Notes under the pieces: model-generated | Seen by the model: only the letters and a program-made list of their open reading frames with translations | What the model was told of the DNA's origin: nothing | Databases searched by the model: none | In this document: piece after piece, positions 1,889 to 7,560 of the stretch | Layout of the letters: the number at the start of each line of letters is the position of its first letter | Position numbering within the stretch: position 1 is the stretch's first letter | Source of the DNA: Parasitella parasitica NRRL 2501 | Taxonomy: Eukaryota > Fungi > Mucoromycota | Reading direction: 5' to 3' | Assembly: GCA_025201805.1 (NCBI GenBank) | Contig: MU619246.1 | Span: 175,627-239,626 of the forward strand | Length of the DNA: 64,000 bases | Position numbers and translations under genes: made by a program

Positions 1889-2042
1889 GGTGAAAGAACT
1901 GTTTGAAAAAGAAAAAGAAAAAAACCAAAATCTGAATGTGCTCTATACCCAGGAAATGAAATACGTCGTAGTCGTCAACCATTGAAGCTTGGAAAGAGGA
2001 TTATCTTATCAACTTTATAAAACCTCATAGTAGTGACAAGTA

Positions 2043-2145
2043 CAGTTGAACTGATTAATTTTGTCAGTTCAAAAAAAATAAATGTCGTTAGTAAAAAAAT
2101 GAATGTCGTTTGGCAAAAAACAAATGTCACTAACCTAAAAAAAAA
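2043..2145. repeat. Tc1/mariner-type terminus (TA|CAGTT...) with 21-bp-period subterminal repeats, directly downstream of Fanzor
   Basis: TA at 2041-2042 followed by CAGTTGAACTG. A TGTC core recurs at exact 21-bp spacing, four copies. About 70/100 gapless identity to the terminus at 2874-2973. Confidence 0.7.
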
Positions 2146-2195
2146 ATATCTGTTACCTGCATAAAATAATCAGGGCGTTAATCTTGGTGGAAAGT
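2135..2195 (-). ncRNA. Candidate Fanzor omegaRNA (scaffold and start of guide)
   Basis: Minus strand TTTCCACCAAGATTAACGCCCTGATTATTTTATGCAGGTAA overlaps the Fanzor stop and precedes the element end, where omegaRNAs are known to lie. ACC/GGT pairing is possible. The resemblance to a Mucorales Fanzor1 scaffold is from memory and unverified. Confidence 0.5.
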
Positions 2196-2875
2196 TCCTG
2201 TTTTGTTGTCTTAAGAAAATTGTCAGTCGTCTGCCTGTCTTCCTCAAGGAGATTAAAATCCTTCTGAAGTTTAATACAGCTGCAAGATCTCGATTCCATA
2301 GTCGGTTTTCATTGCTTGAACACATACTGCTTCGACATCTTAAAGAAGGTTAGTCTTCATAATCCAATGTTACGTGAGCATATGTATTTTTATTATTTAC
2401 CTTGTTAGGCCATGACACTTTACAGTGGGCATTTTGTGTCGTTGATATGACCTAGGGTTTCGGATTGTTTTAAACTTTTGATCGAGCTTGCCACCACAGC
2501 CTGAGCAGAGGGAAGATATTTTGTAAACTTTAAAACCGTTCTTTTGCAGCATCTTGATCAACCCAGCGTTTCTAATTGGTTCATGGTATTTGGCGTTTGG
2601 TGCAGACCAATTTCCAATTATCAGAACTGAATTCGATCCAAACTTCGTTTTCAACTTGTTTACCAACTGCGCATCATTTTTGTTGTAGTATAATTTGCTT
2701 GAAAACTTGAATTTTCTGAATGGCAATAACTGCAAATTTTGTAAAACATCATGTACACATTGTTTCAAGTCGTTTCGATAATTTGTCAGCATTTCCAACG
2801 CAAGATTGACAATTTCGGTGTTAGCGGCATCGATTAAACGTTCTGATATATGTGGTTGCTGAAGCATTTTATGTA

Positions 2876-4373
2876 CAGTGCGGCCGGGAAATATTGTCCG
2901 TTTTACAAAAATAAATGGCGATTACAAAAAAATATTTGTCGTTTACCAGAAAATAAATGGCGCTAACTAGAAAATGATCGGCCGTTTCTCAATTTTTATT
3001 GGCCATTTCTCAGATTTACTATGGCCGTTTTACGAATTCACTTTGTCGGTTTACTAGACTGTTCTGTTCGCTATGTTGTAGAAGCATGGACGTAAGCCAA
3101 CTAACTCTTAGAATTCTGTTTTATTCAGGCAATTGATGATTTGGCGCTTCGAGTGTCTACAAAATCCACGGAGATCACTTACGCGTACATCGTTGCACGC
3201 ATCAGCAATTCTTTGTGATAAGTTCTCTTCGCTTAGCAGCCTATGGCGCTTCATCTTTCCTTTTACAATGGCCCAAAACTGCTCAATTGGGTTCAGTTCT
3301 GGAGAATAAGGAGGTAGATACATCACTCGATATCCTCTGCTCTCAATCTTTCTCATCATTGGATGCGACTTATGAATAGTACAATTATCCATAACAAGGT
3401 AACTGCCCTTCAGATTTGCATCCATGTCCATAATATCGAGAAGCTCATTCATGAATTTCACAAAGTGAGCTGTGGTTGTACCTTTGGAAGGCGGCTTGGT
3501 TTCTTCTTTCTCAACTTCCACATACTCTATGGTGGGCTCCTCAATGACAATCCCTCCTGTCTGCTCTTTGCCCCTCGCAAGCTTTCTTTTCTTTGACTTC
3601 TCTGCTTGAATTGTTTGAGGCTTCTGTCCTCTTGGCTTTCTTGGTGGAGGCTTTTTCATGACAACGTGAAGAACACTAGAAGAATGAATGGCGCCAATGA
3701 TAGTATGTGAGGGGGAGCGAGTCTTTGCAATATCAACAATGGCAGGTGTTCCTACTGCTGATCTAGCCCAATTGCTCCTCATGTTGATATTGAATCCAGC
3801 CTCATCAATGAAGACGCAGTTTGTGCCGTAATCAAGATCAGAATCCTTCCAATTCATGAACCATTCATATCGTTTTTGCAAGTTTTCGGGAGAGTTTCTC
3901 GCCTTGGGGTCGAAGGTTGGCTTCTTGATGGATATGAGCATATTGTTCCTCAGATGATCATTCATTTGAGACTTCGAGATTTTGAAGTCTTCAAACTTGG
4001 ATGTCAACATATCAATGATATCGTCAGCACAAAGCTGCGAGTCTTTTTCAATAACATCCTGGATATACTTCTCATGTTCTCCAGTAAAGGAACTGGGTCT
4101 GCCTGCGTTTTTTTCAGATTTCTTGTAGGCTACCTCACCCGTCTCGTTATAGTGCTTCCACCAACGCATAGCGGTACGAGGGTTTATACCCAGCTCTTTC
4201 GCTGCTGCTGTTACCCTTCCTCTTTCCACAGGGCCTTCAAGCATTCTTTCAATAAATGTTTCTCTTGTGAGATCATTGTGCTGCTTGTAAGCGCGGTCCG
4301 AGACATATTTAGCAACTTTGAAAGGCTTTACAGAAACATCTTTCATAATGACTTCTTTGTCTTGTGGTTTAAG
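2876..4373 (-). mobile_element. Tc1/mariner-IS630 superfamily DNA transposon nested in the Fanzor gene; the other end lies in the gap
   Basis: TA at 2874-2875, then CAGTGCGGCCGGG and 21-bp-period repeats. Fanzor coding sequence resumes right after the TA (xHKMLQQPHISERL) and continues beyond the gap at 4979. Confidence 0.85.
3108..4373 (-). CDS. DD34E Tc1/IS630-family transposase, 5' end in the gap
   Basis: Open frame with HTH (AAAKELGINPRTAMRW), FIDEAGF, VMDNCTIH and YLPPYSPELNPIE; 34 residues lie between the second D and the E. Confidence 0.93.
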   Translation of the reverse strand, partial: LKPQDKEVIMKDVSVKPFKVAKYVSDRAYKQHNDLTRETFIERMLEGPVERGRVTAAAKELGINPRTAMRWWKHYNETGEVAYKKSEKNAGRPSSFTGEHEKYIQDVIEKDSQLCADDIIDMLTSKFEDFKISKSQMNDHLRNNMLISIKKPTFDPKARNSPENLQKRYEWFMNWKDSDLDYGTNCVFIDEAGFNINMRSNWARSAVGTPAIVDIAKTRSPSHTIIGAIHSSSVLHVVMKKPPPRKPRGQKPQTIQAEKSKKRKLARGKEQTGGIVIEEPTIEYVEVEKEETKPPSKGTTTAHFVKFMNELLDIMDMDANLKGSYLVMDNCTIHKSHPMMRKIESRGYRVMYLPPYSPELNPIEQFWAIVKGKMKRHRLLSEENLSQRIADACNDVRVSDLRGFCRHSKRQIINCLNKTEF

Positions 4374-6919
4374 NNNNNNNNNNNNNNNNNNNNNNNNNNN
4401 NNNNNNNNNNNNNNNNNNNNNNNNNNNNNNNNNNNNNNNNNNNNNNNNNNNNNNNNNNNNNNNNNNNNNNNNNNNNNNNNNNNNNNNNNNNNNNNNNNNN
4501 NNNNNNNNNNNNNNNNNNNNNNNNNNNNNNNNNNNNNNNNNNNNNNNNNNNNNNNNNNNNNNNNNNNNNNNNNNNNNNNNNNNNNNNNNNNNNNNNNNNN
4601 NNNNNNNNNNNNNNNNNNNNNNNNNNNNNNNNNNNNNNNNNNNNNNNNNNNNNNNNNNNNNNNNNNNNNNNNNNNNNNNNNNNNNNNNNNNNNNNNNNNN
4701 NNNNNNNNNNNNNNNNNNNNNNNNNNNNNNNNNNNNNNNNNNNNNNNNNNNNNNNNNNNNNNNNNNNNNNNNNNNNNNNNNNNNNNNNNNNNNNNNNNNN
4801 NNNNNNNNNNNNNNNNNNNNNNNNNNNNNNNNNNNNNNNNNNNNNNNNNNNNNNNNNNNNNNNNNNNNNNNNNNNNNNNNNNNNNNNNNNNNNNNNNNNN
4901 NNNNNNNNNNNNNNNNNNNNNNNNNNNNNNNNNNNNNNNNNNNNNNNNNNNNNNNNNNNNNNNNNNNNNNNNNNNNNNGATAATAAGGTGTTGACAGAGG
5001 CTCTTGTTTTAATGTATTCCACATAGTTGTCTACGTTTACAGAAGAAGATTTGGTTTCCGATAGCGTGGCTTCTGCAGCTTTGATAACTTTTGGCTTGGT
5101 TTTCTTTAGCAACATTTTGAAGTGTCTTGATAATTTACTTTGAGTTGCGTTAGAATACACTAGGGTTTGTTTGTCGCTCGTTTTGCTTGTTTCTTTCATG
5201 CAGTATAGCAAGTCTCTTCTTCCTGGATCCATGAGCACACATTTTCCATTAGTTCCCTTCAATTCTTCTTTTGCTAAATTTTCGATATATCTCGTTTCAT
5301 CATCGGCTACATTCTTATCACTCTTGACTGGCGGCCCTTTTCGGGAGGTATCGCAGTTCTGTTTAATGATACTGGCACCAACTCCATCAATTTCAAGAGT
5401 ACCTTTGAAGCTTAAGTATCCTTAGTCTTTAAAAGCCTTGGTTTTAAGATTGACTATAGATCCCCAGTTCTCGAGTTGACTTCTTGGCATCAAAGGTTTC
5501 TTGCTTTGAATAATATGGTAGTGGATAATCTTGTTGTCTAACGTCATGTAGCAAGGAATGAATGTCGTTCTTAATGGGAAACAGAAAAATTGCTTTAGCT
5601 GCACCGCTTCAAACAATTCAGCAAGTTTAACGATGGCTTTGAAGTGGTTTTCTGGATTAGCCTTTATATCGTAGAAGATTGAGTCCATTTTAAACATGTA
5701 ATTTTCTGGATATGCCGACAAGAAAGTTTGTACTTTTGGTTTTGATGATTCATTCAAAATATCAACGTTGGGTATGCCTTTTTTAGCTGCAGCTTGTATA
5801 ACTTGGTCACAGGGATTGTAAGCCTTTTGTCGTATCGCTTCTTTAATAGCTTCTTCACTAAACGCATTGGACGCCATTTCTTTACGGATAGTATCCGCTC
5901 TTTCTTTTTTTTTCACAGAGCTTATTTAGTAGAGTTCGCAATCTATTTCCAAAATGGGTCTTTATGTTGTTAAGATAGGCAGTTTGGATCTTGGTGCACT
6001 CATGTAGGGCTATTTGTTGAGCATTCACCAGTTTGATTGGAGTATAATTCGCGTCTTCCAAGTAAGATTGTTGATATTTTGCTATGAACTTCCTGTACTC
6101 CGCAGTCGTGTCTTTAAGCTTAACAGACCTGCGGGTAGTATTTTGGATCAGAGACAAGAACACTTCCACAAAGAATTCTTTTCGTGGCCAGTTCTTTCAA
6201 GAACATGTATTCTGAAAAAGCAAATGTGTGAGTGATGACTGTATGAGTAGTATTCACTAGATTATACAATCTGCAAACATTCTGGTTTCCATATATTTTT
6301 GATAGTTGTTTTCACTGTCATCACCTTTTTTCTTGTTTTATCATCAAAGCTTTTCGTTGTAGAACCAGGTTTGGTAGCAGTAGAGTCAGACTTGGAAGTA
6401 GTAACATTGGGTATATTCATGAAACTATCTGGTTGTGTAGTCTTGCTTGGTTCACCTATCATTGGACCTTGAGCATTGGTGTTACGAAAGCCGATCTTGC
6501 TTGTGCTACCAATTTCGTCTTTGGCAGAATTGTCGCTTTGTTTACCTATGTAATGGGTGTTTAAAATGCTTTGATTCTTCAACACTTATGAATATAATGT
6601 ACTAATACATACTTCTTTTTCTAAAGGTTACTGATGGCTGAAAATCATCGTCTGAATTGTCGGTTATAGTTTTTTCATATGTGTCTACCATCTTAGCTTA
6701 AATTAGTAACGTTTTGGTCAGAAATTAACATGTATCTTCATCGTTTCTGTTCTTAAAAGACTCCTCTTCAGAGCAAGAAGTAAAAGTATCCTTCCGACTT
6801 TTCGTCATCTGTACTTTTCTGAAGGGAATAGTTATTTATATATGGTGTCTTCAGAAAACTAGTTTAAAAAAGAAACAAATGTGTAGAAAAAAAAACAAGA
6901 CACAAAATATTTATGGAGA

Positions 6920-7560
6920 ATGCATTGTAGGTTCTAATAACGACAATATGTGCCATTTGTTATTTCAAAATAGACAGAAATTACAGGTTGCACTGTTACA
7001 GAATTGTTCCATAACGTTTATCACTAATGCCTTGATCTTGTAAATGAACTGCCATGGCCTTCAGTTAAGTTCAGCAGGATAAAAAATGACATCGTGGTTA
7101 TGATCCTTGAGATATTTGTAGCAGGCTTGTAATCAAGAATCAATATTAGTTGTGTTGTCCTCGACATTTTTGTTTCAACTTACTGTATCAAGCGCCCCAT
7201 AGAACATTTGTTTAAAAGCATTATCAACCAGCAGCATGCTGAATAATTGTAGCTTGACATCTTAGTCGACCATTTGTACTTGCAATTGTGGCTATACAGG
7301 TATTTTCAATTAATTTTATAAAAATGAAATAAGACGACAATGCAACTTACCTTCTATCCTTTATAGTTGGTACAGGTTGGAGCAATAAAAAGTGAAATTT
7401 TTTCAAAACTCACTGAGAGTTGATTTTCCTCTTGCAAACTATAAAGTACTTATTACAAACTCTTCTCCATGCCTTTCCTTAAACCTAGTCTGACTTACCA
7501 AATACCTTTCGTTTGGCATAGCACTGTGTTTGCTATCGTACCAGGAATAATAAGCTTGCA
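6920..7560 (-). pseudogene. Degraded TE-associated gene remnant upstream of Fanzor, possibly PD-(D/E)XK family
   Basis: Broken frames read ACYKYLKDHNHDVIFYPAEL/LKAMAVHLQDQGISDKRY. Intron-like signals are present but there is no long ORF. Confidence 0.3.

Follow-up and report, generated by a model that had tools for sequence, protein, structure and literature searches.

A decayed Fanzor1 omegaRNA scaffold inside a Tc1-like transposon of Parasitella parasitica and the likely source of its guide

Judged from its sequence, the minus-strand segment 2193–2156 of the window (the whole analysed stretch of 64,000 nucleotides from Parasitella parasitica NRRL 2501) represents a decayed omegaRNA scaffold belonging to a Fanzor1 gene which is itself dead and is carried by a Tc1-like transposon. 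The original prediction had placed a compact scaffold here, followed by a fixed guide encoded within the element and implying that the nuclease does something other than cut the empty donor site. The working guide is instead most likely the host DNA just past the terminal TA of the element, brought to the scaffold by an NCAG:YUGU helix through looping or splicing, a reading to which we give a little better than even chances. We regard a fixed internal guide serving some purpose other than homing as less likely and do not favour it, since a flank-derived guide fits better both the target-adjacent motif (TAM) and the comparative anatomy of the elements.

The scaffold remnant was recognised by its homology to the published omegaRNA of PpFz1 (Saito et al. 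2023; Xu et al. 2024, PDB 9cf0–9cf3). Between TCCACC and GGTAA the published RNA and the window match at 30 of 39 positions, and between TCCACC and GCAGGUA the published RNA and the family-A consensus match at 32 of 39, both counted by eye; the published RNAs were compared by eye and left out of the stem-loop 1 (SL1) alignment described below. The likeness to a short Parasitella Fanzor1 scaffold, which the original prediction had pointed out, was therefore correct, and the minus strand at 2193–2154 reads as it was quoted. The scaffold lies on the sense strand of a gene matching PpFz1 and overlaps its last exon, 2338–2170. A 23-nt degenerate motif made for the scaffold gave 10 matches in the 32.8-Mb assembly and none with a reversed control, and nine paralogues could be aligned through the scaffold, so that a chance match is not the explanation. 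The resemblance to PpFz1, which comes from the same organism and shares 57% identity in the exon containing the RuvC-II and zinc motifs, extends base by base through a 7-bp SL1, a UUAWCG loop and the ..UUAAUGCAGGUA.. linker. The window copy differs from PpFz1 in that it belongs to another paralogue family, its reading frame enters the scaffold, its SL1 is broken and 39 nt have been deleted. An Rfam scan of 1900–2500 at E<=1 returned no match, and the exact PpFz1 3' segment is absent from the assembly containing the window.

The scaffold belongs to a decayed element of what we call family A, occupying 2041–6995 on the minus strand with its limits set where homology to the paralogues starts and stops. 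The left terminal inverted repeat (TIR) begins with CAGTGCAACC at 6995 and the right terminus reads ...CAACTG-TA (2043/2042–2041). The Fanzor exons were used one by one as separate queries. The exon at 2873–2401, covering RuvC-II and the zinc ribbon, matched PpFz1 (PDB 9cf0) with E=1.9e-39 and about 57% identity, and an annotated P. parasitica protein with 100% identity. It is followed by an intron (2400–2339) and by the last exon (2338–2170), which carries the RuvC-III motif LWNRDLAAVLNF and aligns with the C-terminus of PpFz1. The gene is interrupted by a nested Tc1-type element at 2874–5000, also on the minus strand, encoding a transposase with HTH domains and a Pfam DDE_3 domain (E=3.5e-24). 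The left end of the nested element is hidden by a run of N (4374–4978), its right end is ...GCCGCACTGTA at 2884–2874, and between the stretches of Fanzor homology on either side there is a gap of approximately 175 nt. Over its last 102 nt the nested element has 71% identity with the right end of the Fanzor element; it is thus a related autonomous DDE_3 element with similar ends, and a plausible source of the transposase moving family A in trans. The right end of the nested element has the same design of subterminal repeats but reads CCGGCCGCACTGTA, without an AG 10 nt from the end.

The scaffold remnant itself comprises the 5' arm of SL1 (2188–2182), the loop UUAACG (2181–2176), the 3' arm (2175–2169), a linker and GCAG at 2160–2157. 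Two changes within it, A2182 and A2170, are private to the window copy and both break SL1. The change at 2170 creates the stop codon TGA at 2172–2170 from the TGG found in all other paralogues, and AAGA is read where the other family-A copies have AAGG. The predicted overlap with the last Fanzor codons is thus real in this copy, the stop lying inside the scaffold, but these last codons are peculiar to it. At 2156|2155, paralogue alignment shows that 39 nt have been lost from this copy alone, leaving the junction GCAGG|TAACAGATA. With a transposon nested in the gene, a private stop, a broken SL1 and this deletion, the window copy is dead. Its left end (6900–7000) is also damaged, the junction being TA-A-CAGTG and not TA-TA-CAGTG, and about 100 nt of its left subterminal region are missing relative to other copies.

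Beyond the scaffold, the CAGATA, T-run, subterminal repeats and TA end that had been described were all found. CAGATA (2152–2147) and ten T (2146–2137) come directly 3' of the scaffold and lead into repeats with a period of 21 nt; a repeat search delimited these subterminal repeats of about 21 nt, with the core AACGACAT and a T-run, to 2153–2071, and they are probably transposase-binding sites. The terminal part of the right TIR (2067–2041) contains a branch-point-like CTGAC (2067–2063), an AG (2052–2051) and the last 10 nt UUCAACUGUA (2050–2041), in which CUGU is complementary to the GCAG of the scaffold. Host flank, CTTGTCACTA..., occupies 2040–2021 and, under a model in which the guide is taken from the flank, would be the former guide of this copy.

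Family A has at least nine copies in the 32.8-Mb assembly. Four intact copies of about 3.2 kb have the structure TA|CAGTGCAACC...CAACTG|TA, with imperfect TIRs of approximately 50 bp, CAGT...ACTG termini and a TA duplication as in Tc1/mariner elements, of which they would be non-autonomous members with Fanzor as cargo. Alignment of the paralogue 3' regions, the check proposed with the original prediction, showed that conservation reaches the element end at 2041 and that the flanks diverge from 2040. The other family-A copies carry some 39 nt more between GCAGG and TAACAGATA. This segment is wholly or mostly kept in L003, L004, L005, L006 and L008 and in the PpFz-type outgroup, and it has been shortened independently in L007 (by 11 nt), L002 (by 24 nt) and, more extensively, L009. 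The scaffold end that had been proposed at GCAGGUAA (GCAGG|UAA) is therefore the junction of the deletion private to the window, and the guide proposed to follow it, CAGAUA and the U-run, is an artefact absent from intact copies. Stops, deletions or nested insertions disrupt most copies in the assembly. The genome also contains Fanzor1 families that are more diverged, at least three in number (contigs C16, C22, C1, C99, C107, C138, C2 and C87; loci L027–L045), most copies of which carry stops; the C16 copy has an open exon of 523 aa and a differently built 3' tail.

The distance from the CAG to the end of the element is 116 nt in the window copy, 121–154 nt in intact family-A copies, 75–90 nt in family B, 162 nt at the PpFz-type locus and 150 nt in Rhizopus azygosporus. 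Among further contigs it is 77 nt in L090, 41 nt in L095 and 40 nt in L096, and the scaffold has a similar position in Pilaira and Cokeromyces. Thus in every intact relative examined the scaffold ends 40–162 nt before a Tc1-type terminus and is internal to the element. The homology among family-B copies does not end at the scaffold; in the fuller alignment it continues for approximately 64–79 nt to the Tc1 end. What follows the scaffold is conserved among paralogues and is not a variable flanking guide. The part of the original prediction which held that the sequence after the scaffold is encoded by the element is accordingly upheld for the window, all paralogue families, other Mucorales and the published RNAs. 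A fixed internal guide that works as such is not favoured given the TAM match, the lack of an evident target in this genome, the proneness of the segment to deletion and the NCAG:YUGU complementarity, each taken up below. L096 and L097 represent the same locus from two independent sequencing runs, and in both the element continues for 40 nt after the scaffold, to the ...CCCTGTA end, the flank beyond being identical over about 820 nt; the 40-nt stretch holds a 7-bp hairpin, UUUCCCA...UGGGAAA.

In the intact relatives the scaffold consists of a 7-bp covarying SL1 with a UUAWCG loop, a 12-nt linker and NCAG. SL1 was aligned across ten lineages, namely families A and B, the PpFz-type locus, Rhizopus azygosporus, five Logan contigs and the window. 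Paired cells made up 81% of the total compared with 65.5% in shuffles, none of 500 shuffles reaching the observed value, and slid controls were only 27–49% paired. Five of the seven pairs have changed on both sides. The covariation which the original prediction proposed to look for is therefore present in the family as a seven-bp stem, a stem which the window copy no longer has: two pairs of SL1 are invariant except in this copy, where they are unpaired, and it retains four of the seven pairs.

The published Parasitella RNAs have the same internal position. Xu et al. 2024 reported a 71-nt PpFz1 omegaRNA from RNPs produced in yeast, with a 7-bp SL1, an SL2 of 4 bp, the TAM ATN and a guide whose first position is near nt 50, and termed its scaffold 'the smallest known scaffold'. 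A 49-nt scaffold with the guide directly after it cleaves DNA in vitro. Saito et al. 2023 listed two Parasitella RNAs with different scaffolds (supplementary loci 58 and 59). The only experimental Parasitella RNAs, obtained by sequencing yeast RNPs, are 71 and 89 nt long and both end inside the element; the parts following the scaffold in the two RNAs of Saito et al. are identical at about 18 of 22 positions. At a third locus, L092 (LN733591), the same 'guide' segment was found almost unchanged at 5503–5524, upstream of a 111-bp right TIR at 5544–5654. By comparison of these loci, the published native Parasitella 'guides' are thus element DNA and not flank. The literature treats the 3' part of the PpFz1 RNA as guide, and no mention of its position inside a Tc1-like element was found there.

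These RNAs are the best case for a fixed, element-encoded guide directly downstream of a compact scaffold, with a role beyond cutting the empty donor site, for instance against a fixed sequence in related elements or host fungi. RNAs of 71 and 89 nt are bound by the PpFz proteins in yeast, their guide parts are nearly the same at two loci and almost unchanged at a third, and a 49-nt scaffold with an adjacent guide is active. However, the conservation at the three loci is not confined to the guide. The L092 protein is near-identical to PpFz1 (PDB 9cf0) as far as residue 400 or so and clearly diverged beyond, SL1 has diverged with compensating changes, and the RNA tail after SL1 is near-identical again. 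The C-terminal half of the nuclease and SL1 seem to have been exchanged jointly as a module between elements. Given that only these parts have diverged, the PpFz-type elements are mosaics with common outer parts, which better explains the conserved 'guide' and makes it poor evidence for a selected fixed guide; selection on the segment was considered and rejected in favour of mosaicism.

The joint divergence of protein half and SL1 also bears on whether the scaffold functions at all. It could be a relic, a Fanzor unit with a right end of its own having been captured long ago in a Tc1-like shell, so that the RNP would be left without a meaningful guide and the gene would decay as a passenger. 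The broken state of most copies in the assembly and the internal position of the scaffold in all lineages examined are what such a history would leave. Yet SL1 pairing is kept by compensatory changes across genera, long intact open reading frames persist in many Mucorales, and the C-terminal half and SL1 diverge as one module, all of which argue for continued selection on the RNP and make a relic quite improbable.

The TAM gives a clearer indication of where a working guide would lie. The left flank ends in ...A-TA in all five elements for which it was read (four family-A copies and the PpFz-type L092), so that in the inferred empty site the right flank would be directly preceded by ATA, in agreement with the published PpFz1 TAM, ATN. 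A 2026 review reads the 5' target-site duplication as part of the Fanzor TAM. An RNP whose guide came from the right flank would recognise the empty site, with the TAM A-TA followed by that flank. A function other than cleavage of the empty donor site is therefore not favoured, the identity of TAM and insertion site being what a flank-derived guide predicts. A genome search with the family-A equivalent of the guide, of the kind proposed with the original prediction, found paralogues only, plus one weak 3-mismatch match on C205. The PpFz guide gave four 3-mismatch matches compared with one for a control, and neither search indicated an evident target. In addition, the internal segment is unrelated between families and, within family A, has been shortened independently by 11, 24 and 39 nt.

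One further layout can be read either way. L095 (Logan contig, 1–2886) consists of a single complete element, bounded by perfect 30-nt TIRs and encoding a Fanzor of 732 aa without introns. Its right TIR would follow a 49-nt scaffold exactly, and at its left end, on the bottom strand, the same TIR sequence is preceded by ATG, compatible with an ATN TAM. This may be a coincidence or may hint at a guide which matches the TIR and cuts the other end of the element, as a fixed guide would. Weighing all of the above, a fixed guide seems unlikely.

For a guide derived from the flank, the NCAG of the scaffold would pair with the last bases of the element, YUGU before the final A, to make a short stem-loop 2 (SL2). 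The intervening 30–150 nt of subterminal repeats and TIR would either be looped out as a dispensable insertion or be removed by the spliceosome, and by either route the flank would come to lie immediately 3' of a scaffold of about 50 nt. In the fold of L095, SL1 and an SL2 closed by GCAG:UUGU (P 0.95–0.98) are followed next by the flank, with no room for an intron. The NCAG:CUGN helix was predicted with P 0.94–1.0 when the complete tails of family A (C57, C101) and of L096 were folded without splicing; its probability was low in R. azygosporus, L090 and one family-B copy. In an engineered omegaRNA of SpuFz1, the Fanzor1 of Spizellomyces punctatus, the distal part of SL2 is dispensable. Some complementarity between CAG and CUG is expected in any case, as Tc1 termini read CAGT...ACTG, and the modelled RNA leaves only one or two nucleotides between SL2 and guide compared with about four unpaired nucleotides in the PpFz1 structure.

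The splicing route would use a donor CAG|GUA... and an acceptor AG 10 or 14 nt before the element end. Put in full, the guide RNAs of Mucorales Fanzor1 would be assembled by the spliceosome, with a CAG|GUA donor at the scaffold and an acceptor 10–14 nt inside the Tc1-type end, thereby removing the whole terminal repeat, making SL2 (NCAG:CUGU) and fusing the scaffold to the flank. This proposal is tentative and we would sooner expect it to fail than to hold. Hypothetical spliced RNAs, joined from the locus sequences of five lineages and folded, had SL1 and SL2 within 47–52 nt, near the 49-nt PpFz1 scaffold. GUA follows the CAG in nearly all lineages, and an AG precedes the end by 10 nt (9–11 nt in two family-A copies) in family A, family B, R. 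azygosporus and L090. In the PpFz type and L096 the distance is 14 nt. Four lineages have a branch-like motif 12–15 nt upstream of the terminal AG. Most lineages thus have the three signals (GU, branch point and AG), with GC in place of GU in three of eight family-A copies and family B being without a clear branch point, but an AG near the element end also occurs in the left TIR and so follows from TIR symmetry as well. If splicing does occur, the 'native guides' published from yeast RNPs are unspliced intron sequence. Saccharomyces cerevisiae is not expected to splice such non-consensus signals, and the yeast RNAs may therefore be unprocessed, which also counts against reading them as evidence of a fixed guide. 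No description of spliceosomal processing of a Fanzor omegaRNA was found in the literature.

Family A has a second intron-like segment. In L078 (6190–6260) and the other family-A equivalents, 60 nt of the form GUACGU...CUAAC...YAG follow the scaffold, a segment deleted in the window at 2156|2155. Removing it would recreate a donor-like CAG|GUUAGU, as at a recursive splice site. Were this segment alone removed after GCAG in family A, the guide would be the next internal sequence (UUGUC...), within the subterminal repeats. The donor, branch point, acceptor and length are typical of Mucorales introns, and the junction CAG|GUUAGU followed by ...GACAU resembles the PpFz1 scaffold end GUAAGCAACAU. 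On the other hand, the donor dinucleotide is GU in only four of eight family-A copies (GC in three, GA in one), the PpFz-type locus L092 has no equivalent acceptor, and the guide would still be internal, so that the TAM arguments apply equally. We consider this outcome very improbable.

Transcript evidence for splicing was sought among the contigs and none was found, no contig being demonstrably a transcript (L089, L090, L091, L093, L095, L096, L097). L089 and L093 are unspliced contigs of genomic type, L090, L091 and L095 retain the donor, and the origin of L096 and L097, genomic or transcript, is ambiguous. L090 stops about 5 nt past the element terminus. The conserved coding intron is absent from L090, L091 and L095, which could be read as a sign of cDNAs and hence as evidence against splicing of the tail. 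This reading was rejected; L095 is genomic, given that the contig spans a single complete element whose perfect TIRs coincide with the contig ends. A search of metagenome contigs for the scaffold close to a Tc1 end gave at least 120 matches, and among the matches listed none adjoins a Fanzor gene while six have an SL1-like stem by chance.

A flank-derived guide, whether reached by looping or by splicing, would bring the Mucorales elements close to SpuFz1, whose TAM, CATA, is the conserved 5' flank plus the TA duplication and whose scaffold spans a 30-nt inverted repeat before a variable guide of 14–15 nt from the flank. In both cases the scaffold lies at the 3' end of the Fanzor1 gene, and the layout of L095 is identical. 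Unlike SpuFz1, most Mucorales elements have 75–162 nt of TIR and subterminal repeats between NCAG and the end, a stretch so much longer that it calls for a further event, either a large loop or splicing. An overlap of splicing element and guide RNA at the right end of a transposon is known from the IStron TnpB omegaRNA (Zedaveinyte et al., PMC10690162), where the production of a functional guide depends on how the RNA is processed. There a bacterial self-splicing group I intron competes with the omegaRNA, whereas here a putative spliceosomal intron would help to build the guide RNA. With the TnpB omegaRNA of IS200/IS605 the Fanzor scaffold shares an overlap with the 3' end of the nuclease gene, a guide after the scaffold and a TAM that equals the target-site motif. 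The IS200/IS605 scaffold ends exactly at the right end of the transposon; the Fanzor scaffold here does not.

Fanzors are eukaryotic RNA-guided nucleases under development as genome editors, and to our knowledge no natural role has been established for them. In this fungal clade, the structurally solved PpFz1 included, the scaffold lies 40–162 nt inside the end of a Tc1-type transposon, and the window copy itself is only a dead witness of this architecture. Two possibilities follow, either a fixed guide carried by these nucleases or a transposon end which is looped or spliced away to give a guide derived from the flank. Either outcome would alter the understanding of Fanzor biology and of omegaRNA design.
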